A stretch of 64,000 bases of DNA from contig CATNEN010000026.1 of assembly GCA_950097015.1 (NCBI GenBank), forward strand, positions 1,116,001 to 1,180,000. Direction: 5' to 3'. The notes under the pieces are model-generated. The model worked only from the letters and a program-made list of their open reading frames with translations, was not told where the DNA came from and did not search any database. The position numbers and the translations under genes were made by a program. Of the stretch, positions 25,960 to 36,379 are shown one piece after another. The first letter of the stretch is position 1, and every line of letters starts with the position of its first letter. This DNA is from Macrostomum hystrix. Taxonomy: Eukaryota; Animalia; Platyhelminthes.

Positions 25960-26375
25960 AGGGTAATGGGAATTGGGTAATCGGTTAATGAGAATTGGAT
26001 GATCGGGTAATGAGAATTGGATGATCGGGTAATGAAATTGGGTAATTGGGTAATGAGAATTGGGTAATCGGGTAATGAGAATTTGGTAATCGGATAATGA
26101 GAATTTGGTAATTGGGTAATGAGAATTTGGTAATTGGGTAATGAGAATTCGGTAATTGGGTAATGAGAATTTGGTAATTGGGTAATGAGAATTTGGTAAT
26201 TGGGTAATGAGAATTTGGTAATTGGGTAATGAGAATTTGGTAATTGGGTAATGAGAATTTGGTAATTGGGTAATGAGAATTCGGTAATCGGGTAATGAAA
26301 ATTTGGTAATCGGGTAATGAAAATTTGGTAATCGGGTAATGAGAATTGGGTAATCGGGTAATGAGAATTGGGTAA
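25960..26375. repeat. 22-bp minisatellite (gggtaatgagaatttggtaatt) just 3' of the Rab gene stop
   Basis: Period 22; ORF 25914-26477 is an artefact. Confidence 0.93.
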
Positions 26376-26445
26376 TCTACTCACCCAGAGAGTATCATAC
26401 CCTGCTTCAATGGTCCCGCCTGCACCCTGTCCAATCGCAGTCGGG

Positions 26446-29400
26446 CTACAATGAGCAACAGCCTTTCTTCTTTTCAATATCGGCGCTTATCTTGATGGCG
26501 TTCCTCAGCTGCTTGTCTTCACGCTCGCGAAGAAGCCTGCGGAATGGAATTAAATATTTGAACACTGTTAGTTGTCTAACAGTTGGCCTCATTGTCTAAC
26601 AGGTAGCCTGATTGTCTAACAGTTGGCCTCATTGTCTAACAGGTAGCCTCATTGTCTAACAGGTAGCCTCATTGTCTAACAGGTAGCCTCATTGTCTAAC
26701 AGGTAGCCTCATTGTCTAACAGGTAGCCTCATTGTCTAACAGGTAGCCTCATTGTCTAACAGGTAGTCTCATTGTCTAACAGGTAGTCTCATTGTCTAAC
26801 AGGTAGCCTCATTGTCTAACAGGTAGCCTCATTGTCTAACAGGTAGCCTCATTGTCTAACAGGTAGCCTCATTGTCTAACAGGTAGCCTCATTGTCTAAC
26901 AGGTAGCCTCATTGTCTAACAGGTAGCCTCATTGTCTAACAGGTAGCCTCATTGTCTAACAGGTAGCCTCATTGTCTAACAGGTAGCCTCATTGTCTAAC
27001 AGGTAGTCTCATTGTCTAACAGGTAGTCTCATTGTCTAACAGGTAGCCTCATTGTCTAACAGGTAGCCTCATTGTCTAACAGGTAGCCTCATTGTCTAAC
27101 AGGTAGCCTCATTGTCTAACAGGTAGCCTCATTGTCTAACAGGTAGCCTCATTGTCTAACAGGTAGCCTCATTGTCTAACAGGTAGCTTTTGTTGTCTAA
27201 GAATAAATAACTAAGAGGTATCTTCATCAGTCGAAATTCATTGTCTCGGATGCTAATAGAAGTGAAAGTCGAACACTTGCATGGCGAATTTGACGAAGGC
27301 CTCGCTAACGGAGGCGCCGCTCTTGGCGCTGACCTCGAAGAACAAGGCCGGCGCATCTCCGGAGTCGTTGCACTCGTCGACTAACCGCTGGGCCGCATCG
27401 GCGTCCACCACCCTGGCAGCTGGTGCTGCGCCCTTCACCTTCTTTGTCTGCGTCAGCAGGTCCACCTTGTTGCCTAGCAGCAGCTTCACTGCACTGTCGC
27501 CGTCGCCCTCCTGGACGCAGTCGAGCCACTCGCGCAGGTGCAGATAGCTCTGGGCGTTGGTGACGTCATAGACAATCACGATGCCGTCAGCTTTGCGAAA
27601 GTACTGCTTGGTAATGCTGCGGAATCTGCACGAATGCACCGGAGATCACTCTCTGCACTGACCATAGACAGAATAGAGCGATGCTACACACTCCATCATC
27701 TGCATTGACCATAGACAGAATAGAGCGATGCTACACACTCCATCATCTGCATTGACCATAGACAGAATAGAGCGATGCTACACACTCCATCATCTGCATT
27801 GACCATAGACAGAATAGAGCGATGCTACACACTCCATCATCTGCATTGACCATAGACAGAATAGAGCGATGCTACACATTCCATCATCTGCATTGACACA
27901 CTCGTAAGCAACACACAAGTAGTTCAAACAATGCGGTCCGCATGAGCAGCAGACAATTGGCGACGGTGTTTGATTAGAAAGCATGAGACAGAGCACATAC
28001 TCGTAGAACAGGGGTTTGCCTGTGTATCAAATCGGGTTAGTGACGCCAGATTTCTCTTGACAGTCTTTGCAAGGCCTCGAACTAGTTCTTGAAAAGTTGG
28101 TTTCGGCGGCCATTGAAACCGAGTGCTCGACTTGTTTGCTCAATTGACCGGAAACACGTGCTCAAAAATTCCTAATAAATTTGGAGCAGCCAGCAGTGCA
28201 AGTTGGACAATTCAACGACTAACAGTCAAACTCAGACTCTCAGCCTCATCAAGAGACAGCTCTGACCCGACTCAATCATGAAGTGGCAGCTCGCTCTCGG
28301 ACTCCTGCTGTGCGCCGCCCTGGCCGCCGCCAGCCCCAGCCAGCAGTCGGATGAGGCGGACACCCTGGCCGCCCTGGAGGCCCTGTCCAACATCGAGGGT
28401 CTGTCGGACGAGGGAGCCGTGCACCTGGCCAAGAAGGGCATCCGCATCAGGAAGGTCATCCGCGTCATCAGGACCATCAAGGATGTCGCCGGTGCCATCG
28501 CCAAGTGAATACCAGACCGCCGACCTGACACTGAACTGACGAAACCACAATCGACTAAACTAGGCTCCCTACAATCTATTAACAAAAACAATATCAGTAC
28601 AAAGAGCTCTATGCGCACAATTAGCACCTGAGCTTATGTCAAGCTCAGGCGTCAGTGAAATAAAAAGCCTCAACTTTTTCTCCATATTAATTGATTCGGA
28701 TTCGCTTATTATTTTTCATTCGAATCGTGTAATGCGGCGATGATTTTCTGAGATATGAATTGATGAGGCTCAGGCCACTGAAGGCCAGCTGCTCACCTCT
28801 CCTGACCCGCCGTGTCCCACAGCTGCAGCGCAATCACCTGGCCCTCCAGCTCCATCGCCTTCACCTGGAAGTCGATGCCAATTGTGGCTGCGAATGTCGA
28901 CTTGAAGGCGTTCTGGCACAGTCGGTGAATCACTGAACTCTTGCCGACGCCCGAGTCGCCGATGAACACCACCTTGAAGACGCGCTCTGGTGCTCGTGTC
29001 ACCGCCTTCATGGTGGTGGCAGCAATAGAAGCCATTGTACTCGGCGTGTTCGAATAGCGGTAGTTAAAAAAATCATACAAGCTCTTACAAAACAAGCGGC
29101 CTCTGAAACTGACTCATGTCCGAGGAATTCATCGTCGTCTTCGTCTCCGGCGCCTTCAGGTGACTCGCGAACTTCGTGCGGCCTTTAGTAGCGCAGTTTG
29201 AAGGGTGAAAAAATGTTTAACGGTAGAAAAACTAGTTTTTAATCCCTGGGGAAGACCACTGGGGTATTTCAAATACCCCCTGCCTACTTCACGATAGCTC
29301 AGAAACCGAATGATCGATGATCTTGTCGAAGCTCCTGGTGACAAGGACAACTAATATCTGTATAAACCTATGTGGCGATTCCATATTGGTTAAATTATGA

Positions 29401-32400
29401 ATAAATTAACAATTTAATCAACCCAAAAAGCCACCATTCGGGACTCTGGACTCACTCAGCGCCAGGTGACAGCGGCAGTGGCTCGAGATGCAGCGGCTCC
29501 AGCGGCAGCAGTGACAGCGGCTTCGACGGCTCGTCCGTCTGAACCTCAATCTCGCACAGCACTGGAGGAGGGGTTGGCAACGCAGGCGACGGTTGCGGCA
29601 TCGTCGGGGCGATCATCAGAGTCGGGGTCGGGCTGGGACACGGTGTCACCATTGTGGCGATCTCGGCGGTCTCCCGTGCTGACTCTGTTGCCCCCGCGGC
29701 GAAGGCTGTCGCAGCCACGGTGGCGCAGATTAGTTCCTCTTGGACCTCCGCCTCCTCTTCGAGCTCCTCGATTGAACCGTCGAATTCGATGTCGTCTATG
29801 GGCAGAAATTTTGCGCCGGACATGTCGTCGAATTCGCAGCCGTCGTCCGGTCCGCCCATGATGTCTGCCAGGGTTTCGCCGCTGCGGGAAAAATGGGCGG
29901 TCGATAATGTGCTGATGATCATGTGGCGTGATCTCTAGGGCTTCTTTGAAAGTTCACTCAGGGTTCCCTAAGGGTTCATCCAAGGATTTCCAGATCCTTG
30001 ATCATTTCCAGATCATTAAACAATCAACGATTGTTTAATGTTTATCCTCTACTCTCCTGGATTCCCCAAGCGATCCTAGAATTCCTCAAGGATTCCCTTG
30101 GGGATTCTCCGAAATTCCCTTAAAATTCTACAGAATTCCCCCCAGGAATCTCCCGAGTTCCCTCAGGATTCCCCTTAATTCCCTAACGATTCTCCGGCAT
30201 TCCTTCGGGATTCTCCAGTAATTCCCTTAGGATTCTCTGGAGTTCCCTTAGGATTCTCTAGAGTTCCCTTAGGATTCTCAGGAGTTTCGTTTGGATTCTC
30301 CGGAATTCCCTAAGGATTCTCCGGAATTCCCTTAGGATTTTCCAGAATCCCCCCAGGAATATCCCGAGTTGCAATCTACCAGTGGATTTCTGATTTCCCC
30401 GAAGGAACTCCGGAATTACCCAAGGGATTCGCCAGTTGTTTCAGAGTACCTTAATATCCCAAATGTATTCCCTCAGGACTCTTCAGCTCCGCTGACTCAC
30501 CCGGCAACCACAGCCGCTGACGCCAGCAAGCACTGCAGCGATTCCTGTCTGTTGAAGTCACGCAGTCCGTCTGTCTGTCCCTCGCCACCCGGCTCTCTAA
30601 AGTGCACGATCTCGCCGAAACCGGCGCCAGCTCTGCCCAGCCCGCCCGCAATGTCGCTCTCGTCCTTCAGACGCCGATTGTCGTTGCGTAGGGACTCCAG
30701 CTGGCGGACAAGATTCTCCCGCTCCAGCGCGATGCCCTCAGTCAGGCGCATCGCCGACTGGACGCGTCGCCTTCGGTCCTCCTTGAACTTGCGCTGCAGC
30801 TCCTCCACGTAGCTCTTGGACTCATCTAGGGCTTCGCGAGAGTCAGCGAGCTCGGCCTCCAGGGCGTCGCGCTCTTTGCCGAGCCGTTCGTTCTCTTGGG
30901 CCGACTCAGAATGCGCGTGGTTGAGCTCCACCAGCCGCTTCTCCAACTGCGGGTTGCGGGGCATGATTTGTCAGCTACGGGATTGCGAATGCAACAATAA
31001 GAAACTAAGTAACGAATGCATTTTGTAACAAAATAGTTAACTGATAGGTTGAAGTGCAAACTGTTTCATTATTAACGAATTCAAATGTCAAAGTTTGATT
31101 CAGTCAAGATTGGATTATTTATTGTTCGACTGACTAAACAAAATGTATTATTAACGGATTAAAAAATTTCCGTATTTAATCTTAAACAAACTTGATTATT
31201 AACGGATTCGAATTTAAACAAATTAAACTTTAACGGATTGGATTATTACCGGATCGTATTATTACCGGATTGGATTATTATTGAAATAAATTTTTAATGG
31301 ATTGGATTATCACCGGATTAAATTTTAGACGTCTTGCTTTTTAAAGGATTGGATCATTAACGGATTGGATAATTAACGGATTGGATTATTAACGGATTGG
31401 ATTATTAACGTATTCGATTATTAACGGATTGGATTATTAACGAATTGGATCATTAACGGATTGGATAATTAACGGATTGGAATATTAACGGATTGGAATA
31501 TTAACGGATTGGATTATTAACGGATTGGATTATTAACGGATTGGATCATTAACGGATTGGATAATTAACGGATTGGATTATTAACTGATTGGATTACTTA
31601 CGGATTGGATTATTAACGGATTGGATCATTAACGGATTGGATCATTAACGGATTGGATAATTAACGGATTGGAATATTAACGGATTGGATTATTAACGGA
31701 TTGGATTATTAACGGATTGGATAATTAACGGATTTGATCATTAACGGATTGGATAATTAACGGATTGGATTATTAACTGATTGGATTACTTACGGATTGG
31801 ATTATTAACGGATTGGATCATTAACGGATTGGATCATTAATGGATTGGATAATTAACGTATTGGAATATTAACGGATTGGATTATTAACGGATTGGATTA
31901 TTAACGGATCGGATTATTAACGGATCGGATTTAGAACGGATTGAATTATTGATTGGATTGGATTTCTAACGGATTGGATTATTACCGGATTAAACTCTAG
32001 ACGTCTTGTTTTTTAGCGGATTGAATCATTAACGGATTAGATAATTAACGGATTGGATTTATAACGGATTGAATTATTGATTGGATTGGATTACTAACGG
32101 ATTGGATTATTAACGGATTGGATCATTAACGGATTGGATCATTAACGGATTAGATTATTAACCGATTTAATTATTAACGGATTGGATTACTAACGGATTG
32201 GATTATGAACGTATTGGATTATTAACGGATTGGATTATTAACGGATTAGATTATTAACGGATTGGATTATTAACGGATCGGGTTATTAACGGATTGGGTT
32301 ATTAATTCGATTAGATTATCAATCTAGCGGGTTGGATTATCAATCTAACGGATTGGATTATCAATCTAACGGATTGGATTATCAATCTAACGGATTGGGT

Positions 32401-35400
32401 TATTATCGGAGTTGAAAAGCAACGTATTCTAATTAAGTAGATGGCTTAATTAACGAATTAAATTAGCAGCACAGAACTGAAACAATTAGTTGTTTACCCT
32501 CTCGTGGTTCTTCATCAGTTCGTGACACAGTTTTTCCTTCTCCATGATCTCCCTGTTCATCTCCTCTCGCAGCTGCCTCTCTCTCCCCCGCTCCTCGGCC
32601 AGAACCCTGGCTCGCTCGGCCCTGATCTGCGACTCCATCTCTTCGTACAGCCGGCGCATCTCCTCTTCGTGCGCTGTCAGTTTACTGAATTTTATTTGAT
32701 TTTCTAACAATTTTATTTGAGAATAAACAAAAAATGCTATCCTTCTACTCACGAATTGAGTTAGGAATTAGACTTACGTTCGCATAGTTCTCTCCAGATT
32801 TCTGTAACTATTGTGACTCTTCATGATCTCGTCCGTCATCTTGCTAACTAGGCACTCGAGGCAGGGCACAAGGTCCGGCTGCTCCACCTGGAGACGGGCC
32901 CACAGGTCGCGAAGGCTTTCCTCACTGAAATTCGTTCAGTTGAATTGTGAATCTATAGCGTCAGTTCAGGCGAATAACCATGGATGTAAGTGGTTGCTAT
33001 GACCGAATAATCATGGATGTTAGTGGTTGCTACGACCGAATAACCATGTATGTTAGTGGTTGCTACGACCGAATAACCATGTATGTTAGTGGTTGCTACG
33101 ACCGAATAACCATGTATGTTAGTGGTTGCTATGACCGAATAATCATGGATGTAAGTGGTTGCTATGACCTAATAACCATGTATGTTAGTGGTTGCTATGA
33201 CCGAATAATCATGGATGTAAGTGGTTGCTATGACCGAATAATCATGGATGTTAGTGGTTGCTATGACCGAATAATCATGGATTTAAGTGGTTGCTACGAC
33301 TGAATAACCATGGATGTAAGTGGTTGCTACGACCGAATAATCATGGATGTAAGTGGTTGCTACGACTGAATAACCATGGATTTAAGTGGTTGCTACGACC
33401 GAATAATCATTGATGTTAGTGGTTGCTATGACCGAATAATCATGGATGTTAGTGGTTGCTATGACCGAATAATCATGGATTTAAGTGGTTGCTACGACTG
33501 AATAACCATGGATGTAAGTGGTTGCTACGACTGAATAATCATGGATGTAAGTGGTTGCTACGACTGAATAACCATGGATTTAAGTGGTTGCTACGACCGA
33601 ATAATCATTGATGTTAGTGGTTGCTACGACCGAATAATCATGGATGTTAGTGGTTGGTACGACCGAATAATCATGGATGTAAGTGGTTGCTACGACCGAA
33701 TAATCATGGATGTAAGTGGTTGCTACGACCGAATAATCATTGATGTTAGTGGTTGGTACGACCGAATAATCATGGATGTTAGTGGTTGGTACGACCGAAT
33801 AATCATGGATGTAAGTGGTTGGTACGACCGAATAATCATGGATGTTAGTGGTTGCTATGACCGAATAATCAGGAAGGTAAATGATTGGTGAATAATTAAT
33901 AAACTTATTGACTGAAAAATCGTAGTGCTAGTAGATTTTTTATAGCTTCTAAACAAGCAAAAATGTTTTCATTTACAATTTACCTGGCTTTTTTCCTAAA
34001 GAAACAGAAAATGAAAAATAATTTTGCATTTCAGCATACTCAACTCATCAATTTGAATGAAATAATTTCTTAGTTTAATTATAGAAGGCTTGTGGGTTTC
34101 AATTTACGTCTATAGGGAGGGGCCAGCCCCAGCAAGGCGCAGAGAGACTGTCACTGCCTAATGATAAGAAAGTCATGCAGATGTACACACATGTCCTCAG
34201 GAGTCAGCGGAATGGGCAGAATTGTCGAATCCTCAGGATAATCCTCAGGATAATCCACAGGAGAATCCACTGGAGAATCCTCAGGGCAGAATCCACAAGA
34301 GAATCCACAGGAGAATTCACATGAAGAATCCACAGGAGAATCCTCAGAAGAACCCACAGAAGAATCCTCAGAAGAATCCACAGGGAAAATCCACATGAGA
34401 ATCCACAGGAGAATCCACAGGAGAATCCGCAGGAGAATCCACAGGAGAATTCACATGAAGAATCCACAGGAGAATCGTCAGAAGAACCCACAGAAGAATC
34501 CTCAGAAGAATCCACAGGGAAAATCCACATGAGAATCCACAGGAGAATCTTCAGAAGAATCCACAGGAGAATCCTCAGGAGAATCCACAGGAGAATCCAC
34601 AGGAGAATCCTCAGAAGAATCCACAGGAGAATCCACAGGAGAATCCACAGGAGAATCCACAGGAGAATCCACATGAGAATCCACAGAAGAATCCACAGAA
34701 GAATCCACAGAAGAATCCACAGAAGAATCCACAGAAGAATCCACAGAAGCCGGTCTAACAGTGGATGTGAGAGATTCCAAGAAAGCAGGCGAGCCGGCGG
34801 AGGCACTCACTCCTGGAAGACACCGGACGACACCAGTTTACTCAAGGTCTGATGAAAATGTTGGTCGTCATCAACGCAGTATTCGTCACAATTGCCGCCA
34901 GCGCCGCCGCTGTGACAGGACTCGGTGCCGGGAGTCGATGACGCAGCTGCGATGCCAGCGAAGGTACCTGCAGTTTTTTACCACACAAAACTGACATTCT
35001 AGATTTGTTCTCGTGACCTATTTAATTAGTTAATATTAATCTAAAGTTTACAGTAATTTTATATTTACAGTTATTTACATTTTTTACATTTACGGTTTTA
35101 CAGTAATCTACAGTTTTACAGTAATCTACAGTTTTACAGTAATCTACAGTTTTACAGTAATCTACAGTTTTACAGTAATCTACAGTTTTACAGTAATCTA
35201 CAGTTTTACAGTAATCTACAGTTTTACAGTAATCTACAGTTTTACAGTAATCTACAGTTTTACAGTAATCTACAGTTTTACAGTAATCTACAGTTTTACA
35301 GTAATCTACAGTTTTACAGTAATCTACAGTTTTACAGTAATCTACAGTTTTACTGTATTCTTCAGTTTTACACTAGTCTACAGTTTACAGTAGTCTACAG

Positions 35401-35698
35401 ATGATAATAACCTTTACAGACAAACGGGAAACAACAACATAGACAGTCATTTAGCAAAAATCCTCTCCCCCAACTCACCGAACCCATCTGTGAATTCCTG
35501 AAGTGTCAGCTTGCCGTTTCTGTCCACATCAAGCTTGTCGAACACATCTTCCACCTGTTCGGCGGTGAGTGACAGCAGGCTGCAAAGCTGCCGCATGTCG
35601 GTGCGGACAATGTGACCCTTGCCGGCGCTGTCGCAGATGCTGAACAGCTCGGCGGCTTTGGCTGCAAGCAGAGCCCTCAGCTCCGAGTCCGCTGACAT
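26446..35698 (-). CDS. RASEF: Large Rab GTPase with N-terminal EF-hands and coiled coil (RASEF/Rab45 - CRACR2A/Rab46 - Rab44 group)
   Basis: Exons 35698-35479 (EF-hands, DKLDVDRNGKLTLQEF), 34967-34811, 32924-32778 (LRDLWARL), 32684-32498 (EEMRRLYEEMESQI), 30946-30501, 29881-29456, 29182-29089, about 29039-28797 (GDSGVGKS, TIGIDF, WDTAGQER; acceptor uncertain), 27625-27281 (FRSITKQYFRKADG, GNKVD, EVSAK) and 26536-26446 (ends KKKGCCSL*, prenylation motif). Phases are consistent except at the exon 7/8 junction. Orthology within the three-member group is not resolvable here. Confidence 0.9.
26570..27197. repeat. Near-perfect 20-bp minisatellite (cattgtctaacaggtagcct), about 31 copies, last Rab intron
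   Basis: Exact period 20. Confidence 0.97.
27655..27897. repeat. 47-bp minisatellite, about 5 copies, intronic
   Basis: Unit accatagacagaatagagcgatgctacacactccatcatctgcattg. Confidence 0.95.
28278..28508 (+). CDS. Antimicrobial-peptide-like prepropeptide (76 aa) nested antisense in a Rab-gene intron
   Basis: Signal MKWQLALGLLLCAALAAA, acidic propiece, dibasic KK, then mature GIRIRKVIRVIRTIKDVAGAIAK. Third codon positions are nearly all G/C. AATAAA at 28659-28664. Confidence 0.85.
   Translation: MKWQLALGLLLCAALAAASPSQQSDEADTLAALEALSNIEGLSDEGAVHLAKKGIRIRKVIRVIRTIKDVAGAIAK
29960..30450. repeat. Degenerate ~20-bp repeat (gaattcccttaggattctcc), intronic
   Basis: Recurrent attccc/ggattctc motifs. 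Confidence 0.75.
31190..32400. repeat. 16-bp minisatellite (ttaacggattggatta), intronic
   Basis: Period 16 with variants. Confidence 0.95.
32978..33870. repeat. 33-bp minisatellite (atggatgtaagtggttgctacgaccgaataatc), intronic
   Basis: Period 33; source of MDVSGCYDRII ORFs. Confidence 0.95.
34083..34225 (+). mobile_element. 5'-truncated SINE-like family A copy
   Basis: ctgcctaatgataagaaagtc...gtacacac...ctcaggagtcagcggaatgggcaga aligns with the sense strand of 52670-52955 and 22255-22510. Confidence 0.7.
34225..34748. repeat. 12-bp minisatellite (gaatccacagga)
   Basis: Period 12, directly abutting the SINE fragment. Confidence 0.93.
35095..35395. repeat. 18-bp minisatellite (cagttttacagtaatcta), intronic
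   Basis: Period 18. Confidence 0.95.
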
Positions 35699-36379
35699 GT
35701 CTTTTGCAACCTTCCGCGGTCTTCTGAAGTCTACTAACAGAGTGCCTTGGCTATATCTGGTCAGCTCAAAGTCTAAAATAATATTTCTCAACCCCCGCCA
35801 GTCTGTTCTCGACTTCCCAAACCAGTTGCAAAGCCCTTTCCGCCAATAGATAAATTCGTGATAAACAGCTTGGTTGCTTCAGGCCATTGTGCAGTTCGCG
35901 TGAGCACTAAGCAACAGCGGAGTATAGCTTTGCTCTTTGCCGTGTCGGAGTTGGGGTTGGCTGGGCTCTTACTGAGAGAGCAGAAAATCGATATCCGATT
36001 GGCAGTGGCAGAGTGAGCTCTCTGGTGGCTCTCCGACTCTATTGGAAGCCCATATTCAGTTTCAGAGGCCTGAAAGCATGGGCTGCTCCTTTGTCCTAGC
36101 TTGCTAGGAGATCTACAACTTCCCCGATTAACAGTCGCCCACACGTTTGGCAAACATCAAGCACTAATCCAATTGATAATACAGCCAACTACGTGACCCC
36201 GCTGAGCTAATATTTTTGTTTTTTCAGCCGTTTCTGAATGTCATTGTAGTAGCCACACACATGCCCAAATCACTGTCAGTTTAAACTTGACAAAGTTCAA
36301 TATGTTATAATTGAACTGGAGTCATGTGACCAGTTTTTAATATAAAATGGTTTCCTGCCGACTGAAGGTTAGTTATTTT

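Follow-up and report, generated by a model that had tools for sequence, protein, structure and literature searches.

The 64,000-nucleotide stretch of the Macrostomum hystrix genome analysed here (contig CATNEN010000026.1, positions 1,116,001 to 1,180,000 of the forward strand; hereafter the window) carries a small prepropeptide gene placed antisense within an intron of a Rab-domain gene (Table 1), which an original prediction, made from the sequence alone, had put forward as a candidate gene for a novel antimicrobial peptide (AMP). The architecture proposed in that prediction, namely a signal peptide followed by an acidic propiece, a KK site and a 23-residue mature peptide, was found exactly at the predicted place. 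The propiece contains 7 Asp/Glu and not a single Lys or Arg, and the Cys-free 23-mer has 7 basic residues and 1 acidic residue. The G/C content at third codon positions reaches 0.896 in the open reading frame (ORF), compared with 0.78-0.80 in the two Rab exons, and the AATAAA that had been assigned to the gene as its own was located at 28659-28664. Besides, the tail contains an 18-nt internal duplication (28433-28467; KGIRIR / KVIRVIR), and this tandem arrangement suggests that the tail was elongated from a short alternating ancestor. Two minus-strand ORFs covering the same stretch (131 and 92 amino acids) were considered and rejected, as they have neither an ATG nor relatives and the substitutions fit the plus frame. 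A scan for bacterial-type promoters and terminators, a type of scan irrelevant to this gene, found nothing.

Table 1. Coordinates of the prepropeptide gene, its regulatory elements and the surrounding host gene in the window (UTR, untranslated region)
Feature	Position	Strand	Remarks
Prepropeptide ORF	28278-28508	+	76 amino acids; ORF and translation read from the sequence
Signal peptide, residues 1-18	28278..28331	+	K2, hydrophobic core, A-A-A before S19 (small residues at -3/-1)
Acidic propiece, residues 19-51	28332..28430	+	33 residues, net -7, family LEALSN motif
KK (K52-K53), presumed prohormone-convertase site	28431..28436	+	Border of conserved and variable parts; presumed cleavage
Predicted mature 23-mer	28437..28505	+	Net +6; no amidation signal in the window copy
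Family upstream element CGGAAACACGTGC, containing GGAA and a CACGTG E-box / ACGTG core	28149..28161	+	Sole match in the 64-kb window (0.09 expected)
TATA-like box TAATAAAT	28173..28180	+	ATAAAT at 28175-28180; presumed function, from the alignment
5'UTR	28238..28277	+	CTCAGACTC / CAGC(C/T)TCATCA segments common to paralogues
3'UTR	28509..28690	+	Hairpin and AATAAA; transcript end 28680-28690
Host intron of the EF-hand/coiled-coil/Rab gene	27626..28796	-	1,171 bp; borders AG|GTGAGC and TGCAG|A
Host Rab exon, P-loop to WDTAGQER	28797..29035	-	Pfam Ras E 4.6e-21, profile positions 1-60
Host Rab last coding exon, FRSITKQYF... to stop	27256..27625	-	Pfam Ras E 8e-20, profile positions 60-160
EF-hand pair (EF-hand_7)	35450-35791	-	E 3e-10
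Coiled-coil-like ORFs of the host region	30500-30964, 32489-32752	-	Upstream of the Rab exons

The prepropeptide gene is real, autonomous, intronless and very highly expressed. Public sequencing runs were used as Logan contigs, which carry no read direction. In this region the RNA contigs are confined to about 28233-28690, and since no joint occurs within them the transcript is unspliced. Word depth summed over the ORF was 600-900 in run X1 and reached 33,000 in run X10, compared with zero across the remainder of the intron and 0-5 across the Rab exons in the same RNA runs, which bears out the earlier claim of a real, highly expressed gene. Run X14 provided an exact contig of 272 nt (28419-28690) at a depth of 142, and the contigs of X1 and X10 stop at 28680 and 28684, placing the RNA end 16-26 nt past the AATAAA. 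Because the unique 3'UTR of the window copy is covered, the window copy itself is transcribed. At the other end, RNA contigs start at 28233-28241 and adapter sequence abuts about position 28238 in two independent studies, which suggests a transcript 5' end at about 28238. The transcript expected from the original prediction is thus present, and its plus-strand orientation is inferred by combining the ORF and the poly(A) signal with the family relationship and the pattern of codon substitutions. Near-identical pieces of 28233-28426 were also seen in sediment, wastewater and 'outdoor' metatranscriptomes and metagenomes (X5-X9, X20, X21), the piece in X5 matching the transcript over 194 nt with 1 mismatch; these pieces reflect either Macrostomum living in the samples or carry-over of an extremely abundant laboratory transcript.

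Two structures were observed around the transcript. In the 3'UTR, a perfect 9-bp hairpin at 28627-28649 (CCTGAGCTT, a 5-nt loop and AAGCTCAGG) lies 10 nt before the AATAAA and may act as an element of mRNA stability or of the 3' end. A 27-nt inverted repeat (28239-28265 / 28747-28773), 74% complementary and with 13/14 positions pairing in its core, brings the 5'UTR block CTCAGCCTCATCAA together with a site ~60 nt beyond the poly(A) site; it could be the remnant of an inverted family copy or a product of chance (rough expectation ~0.1). When signs of transposition were sought as repeats flanking the gene, this marginal inverted repeat was the only one found.

The window gene is one member of a big family, not a lone gene. 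A single-sequence search among 5.8 billion proteins matched nine 'hypothetical proteins' of Macrostomum lignano (E 1.3e-11 to 7e-5) that begin with the same 15 residues and likewise contain an acidic propiece and KK, and a paralogue match at E 1e-11 in a search of that size, together with the abundant transcript, places the ORF beyond chance. Extended searches, run with a profile against 1.84 billion representatives and again with a word index, yielded 11 clusters at 50% identity and 22 at 90%, and the combined family set comprises at least 33 distinct precursors filed as 'hypothetical protein', all entries being from M. lignano GenBank (BOX15_Mlig...) bar one contig from a sequencing run. Relatives with a conserved signal and propiece and a variable mature region, as looked for in the original prediction, were therefore recovered. 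The window gene belongs to this 'MKWQLALGLLLC' prepropeptide family, having the near-identical 18-residue signal, the acidic propiece with its L-E-A-L-S-N core and KK directly before the variable tail, and a single exon preceded by CGGAAAMACGTGC, 13 nt and ATAAAT. No exact record of the window protein was found in the protein look-up and the best identity to it among the matches was at most 63%, so that the window subfamily is unannotated. Moreover, Pfam returned no family for the window protein at E<=1, consistent with the earlier statement that no named family was recognised for the peptide, and PDB sequence searches gave nothing meaningful for the precursor, for the 23-mer or for the Pro/Arg-rich tail. 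Lock_Gag1-like Pfam matches in paralogues (best E 3.4e-6, the cut-off being reached only with a duplicated propiece) were rejected as spurious low-complexity acidic-helix matches. The public paralogue models P0002, P0004, P0031, P0021 and P0027 contain annotation artefacts, comprising a duplicated propiece (one model), two fused genes (one model) and spurious N-terminal extensions by read-through of the 5'UTR (several), and a 73-residue family member is labelled 'SERPIN domain-containing protein' in UniRef.

The size of the family could be estimated from run X16, which has the character of genomic DNA: its depth is an even 74 over the intron and exons. Exact words from 28302-28445 occur in this run at 786-860, about 11-fold over the flanks, and its contigs break three codons inside the mature peptide, at 28446, the 3'UTR being single-copy at 73.7. 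When depth was summed over look-alikes of >=85%, it fell from about 3,000 at the signal to 74 at the 3'UTR. These depths correspond to roughly 40 family copies, about 11 of which have an identical prepro region.

The members of the family share a constant secretion cassette and differ in its payload. In the signal, 15 of the 18 residues show no variation across 10 paralogues (residues 1-15 in alignment A1); L33, E34, L36, S37, N38, K52 and K53 are likewise invariant in A1, and K53 is conserved at >=90% in alignment A2. Nei-Gojobori counts of non-synonymous (pN) and synonymous (pS) change, which rest on small samples and uncertain mature alignments, gave pN 0.03-0.10 versus pS 0.20-0.47 for the signal, pN about equal to pS for the propiece and pN 0.46-0.70 for the mature part, which is unalignable between subfamilies. 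In a recent tandem pair (locus L001) the differences are almost confined to the mature part. At the DNA level, the similarity of paralogues to the window is limited to the segment from -5 through the KK codons (about 76%), the contigs of paralogues, from DNA and RNA alike, branch off at 28446, and RNA contigs lead the same prepro region into other tails (e.g., GIR-LIRAVRTAAT..., ...DVANAIAN and ...AIAGR), the variant ending in ...AIAGR being more abundant than the window copy.

The tails that follow KK measure 6-33 residues and are mostly Arg-rich. They include 8-10-mers with strict hydrophobic/Arg alternation and a Gly end, His-rich 6-7-mers, a Pro/Arg-rich peptide of 33 residues (P0012), Trp/Arg-rich 24-32-mers (P0019, P0031, P0032), a two-Cys 24-mer (P0013) and 18-24-mers resembling the window peptide (P0034, P0019). 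An amidation signal (C-terminal G, GK or GR) is present in 26 of the 33 precursors and absent from the window copy, and the propiece is more negatively charged where the tail charge is higher (r = -0.63 over 33 precursors, uncorrected for relatedness). At one locus (L007; NIVC01000619.1, 1-20183) five complete genes in alternating orientation encode an identical precursor of a His-rich 7-mer amide; a short, non-cationic 7-mer in so many copies hints at a non-lytic role, perhaps metal binding.

A shared promoter accompanies the cassette. The alignment of 160 nt upstream of 12 family genes revealed an invariant CGGAAAMACGTGC, a spacing of 13 nt, ATAAAT and then conserved 5'UTR blocks, and this module was present in all 14 genes examined (the window gene and 13 paralogues). 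In about 137 kb from 7 paralogue loci the element occurs 13 times, in each case 105-130 nt before a family ATG and in the orientation of the gene. A diverged member from another sample (L008) has the variant AGGAAAAACGTGG plus TATA. Since the family promoter module is found at the window gene, this gene brings its own regulation with it, and it may be conjectured that an ETS factor, a bHLH factor or both recognise the element.

Taken together, these features are best read as those of a host-defence peptide with an antimicrobial or membrane-active role, to which we would assign a probability of about 0.6 from what the sequences suggest. The combination of a conserved signal and propiece with a variable mature region speaks most strongly for a defence peptide, and the same direction is indicated by the layout of the precursor, the match in charge between propiece and tail, the amidation signals, the clustering of the genes, the extreme expression and the predicted helix (residues 47-75 in an AlphaFold2 model, pLDDT about 66-78). 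Accordant hints come from comparisons with other peptides, as the clusters that come nearest in a language model are those of bombinin, brevinin, dermaseptin, temporin and pleurocidin precursors, with scores of 0.72-0.81 that lie below the 0.9 level and serve as a lead only. Additionally, the S5 file of Irvine et al. (2023) lists the paralogues BOX15_Mlig024774g1/g2, whose signal is one residue off the window signal, as positive in SignalP 4.1, and an 18-mer paralogue tail similar to the C-terminal half of the window peptide was positive in 100% of 11 AMP predictors (PMC10414684). In the same file, group 142, which contains two paralogues, was dropped as 'Same genome' (PMC10414684), that is, it was discarded because it was found in one genome only.

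Under this proposal, the family promoter (GGAAAMACGTG element plus TATA) would drive plus-strand transcription independently of the host Rab gene, and the 18-residue signal would route the precursor to the secretory pathway and presumably be cleaved there. The anionic propiece (net -7) may neutralise the cationic tail (net +6) during transport or storage until a convertase cuts after KK, a processing step that is putative. In most paralogues, and not in the window copy, trimming of basic residues would probably be followed by Gly-dependent amidation. The released 23-mer is predicted to act as an Ile/Val-rich cationic amphipathic helix on anionic membranes, either of microbes or of other targets, and the family as a whole would keep its secretion cassette constant and diversify the payload.

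Several points weigh against the host-defence reading. The original prediction had described the 23-mer as amphipathic, and its charge and lack of Cys were borne out, but its helical amphipathicity is moderate only, with a moment muH(100 deg) of 0.51 that is equalled by 6.5% of shuffles and a peak of 0.66 at 110 deg (peak region 110-120 deg). KK is rarer as a convertase site than KR or RR, and venom, reproductive and pheromone peptides have the same partition into conserved and variable parts and the same fast evolution. Transcription from the plus strand is inferred only, because the Logan contigs are directionless. Furthermore, some payloads are non-cationic or too short for typical AMPs (the His-rich 7-mer, a 6-mer Pro-amide and AVYKPNYYKD), so that the cassette may carry peptides with other roles.

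Among such roles, the gene family could encode secreted non-immune effectors, such as seminal-fluid or prostate peptides involved in sexual conflict, products of gland, mucus, rhabdite or adhesive secretions, or a cytolysin or digestive aid acting on prey such as diatoms. Reproductive and gland products, too, are compatible with the very high expression, the restriction to one lineage, the tandem clusters and the rapid evolution of the payload; the His-rich 6-7-mers are poor classical AMPs, the alternating 8-10-mers reach beta-type moments of 1.05-1.33 at 170 deg, and alternating V-R or F-H peptides are able to self-assemble. However, the payloads are overwhelmingly Arg-rich and cationic with charge-matched anionic propieces, and the 11 AMP predictors were concordant for the nearest paralogue tail, and we regard an effector of this kind as unlikely. 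No family gene IDs were found in the supplements of the M. lignano ageing and genome papers. A neuropeptide, hormone or pheromone precursor, whose short amidated peptides would serve as receptor ligands, appears more improbable still. Invertebrate neuropeptide precursors, including flatworm FLP/NPF, share the layout of signal, spacer, dibasic site and peptide as well as the Gly amidation signal seen in 26/33 members, some of which end in RF-, RL- or RI-amide, but in neuropeptide genes it is the peptide that is conserved and the spacer that varies, often with several copies present, and the Macrostomum family does the reverse: the prepro region is constant and a single peptide per precursor is hypervariable in length (6-33 residues) and sequence. 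The approximately 40 genomic copies, the extreme RNA depth and the non-amidated 23-residue peptide of the window copy, with its net charge of +6, also speak against it.

The nested position of the gene raised the further possibility, put forward in the original prediction, that it is coupled to a secretion regulator, through either co-regulation or mutual exclusion by transcriptional interference. The geometry itself is genuine: the minus-strand intron splits WDTAGQER from FRS, as had been described, and its splice borders and the split of the Pfam Ras match agree. Strong antisense transcription within the intron could in principle disturb the host gene. The earlier label of a RASEF/CRACR2A-type host is also reasonable in view of the EF-hand pair and the coiled-coil-like ORFs, which together give an N-terminal EF-hand, a central coiled coil and a C-terminal Rab, the joining of the upstream exons being predicted. 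Nevertheless, the peptide gene has the family's own promoter module, none of the 13 paralogues at seven loci lies inside a Rab gene, and the Rab exons show a depth of 0-5 in runs in which the peptide RNA reaches 140-33,000, so that bulk co-expression was not seen, interference within single cells being conceivable. The paralogues instead are clustered, as in the L007 locus (its five complete genes plus one truncated match in 20 kb), the head-to-head pair of L006 and the tandem pair of L001, or stand singly beside CRAL_TRIO or bestrophin genes, and coupling through the Rab nesting is accordingly unsupported and, in our estimation, very improbable. The position in the Rab gene looks incidental and is of little importance.

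The surroundings of the host gene are rich in repeats. Minisatellites occur around the last Rab exon (26005-27187 and 27652-27897; 22 bp x 17, 20 bp x 31 and 47 bp x 5.2), the 47-bp x 5.2 array lying within the host intron at 27652-27897, and further coding-looking tandem repeats were observed at 32980-33891 and 34204-34852. At 29250-29350, the word depth in X16 is ~82,000 compared with the single-copy value of 74, corresponding to roughly a thousand copies.

Overall, our results reveal a family of AMP-type prepropeptides that is new and of independent evolutionary origin and whose 23-mer subfamily, with about 11 copies of identical prepro region, is unannotated. A literature search on the sequences, the gene IDs and Macrostomum AMPs or neuropeptides found no description of the family. 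Reviews describe free-living flatworms as almost unexplored for AMPs, and the classical lophotrochozoan families are lacking in flatworms (PMC12466427, PMC10414684). If the host-defence reading is true, the genes would constitute a large lineage-specific effector family with a simple shared promoter. RNA interference, transgenesis and a single-nucleus atlas exist for Macrostomum lignano, which makes cell type, regulation and function directly testable. The family also offers a clean natural case of a constant secretion cassette with a hypervariable payload beyond vertebrates, molluscs and venomous animals, and an entire subfamily of it was overlooked by standard annotation.

The flatworm AMP-like peptides fAMP-LP-5/-17 and mesco-2, which emerged from computational screens, are likewise linear, cationic and derived from small secreted precursors (PMC10414684, PMC11546468), but those that have been tested are of cestode origin and show no sequence relationship to the Macrostomum family. 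The Mytilus myticalins also form a taxon-restricted multigene family of linear cationic peptides that was obtained from sequence mining, has conserved flanks on either side of a hypervariable cationic region and includes some Pro/Arg-rich members (PMC5577615). Myticalin precursors, however, are ordered as signal, mature peptide and C-terminal anionic propeptide (PMC5577615), whereas the anionic propiece precedes the peptide in Macrostomum; there is no homology between the two, and myticalins were reported as lacking in flatworms by Irvine et al. (PMC10414684). With regard to cecropins, there is no Pfam match and the acidic propiece of 33 residues differs from the very short one that cecropins have at most. 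The earlier description of the precursor as cecropin/dermaseptin-type is consequently inexact in its first half and holds in its second, as the layout resembles that of the dermaseptins.

The closest parallel is the frog skin active peptide (FSAP) superfamily of dermaseptins, brevinins and temporins (PF03032), which has the same order of signal, acidic propiece, dibasic site and C-terminal peptide, the same constant prepro region with a hypervariable payload, a pattern treated in the literature (PMC7106915, PMC6245896), and likewise forms a large clustered family with frequent amidation. It is also nearest in language-model feature space, with an atlas score of 0.78-0.80 only. The Macrostomum family differs in having no Pfam homology (E<=1), KK instead of KR, intronless genes, a flatworm lineage and payloads that include alternating (V/I-R)n 8-10-mers and His-rich 6-7-mers, and on this comparison the likeness to FSAP/dermaseptin precursors is one of analogy, not of homology. 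As a tentative proposal, which we consider possible although short of probable, the family may represent an independently arisen flatworm counterpart of the frog skin-peptide superfamily, in which one cassette and one promoter serve about 40 genes whose payloads fall into several mechanistic classes (membrane peptides of helical and of beta-strand type, a Pro/Arg-rich peptide and His-rich peptides); if true, this would be a whole innate-immune effector regulon under common control, in a model animal ready for transgenesis.

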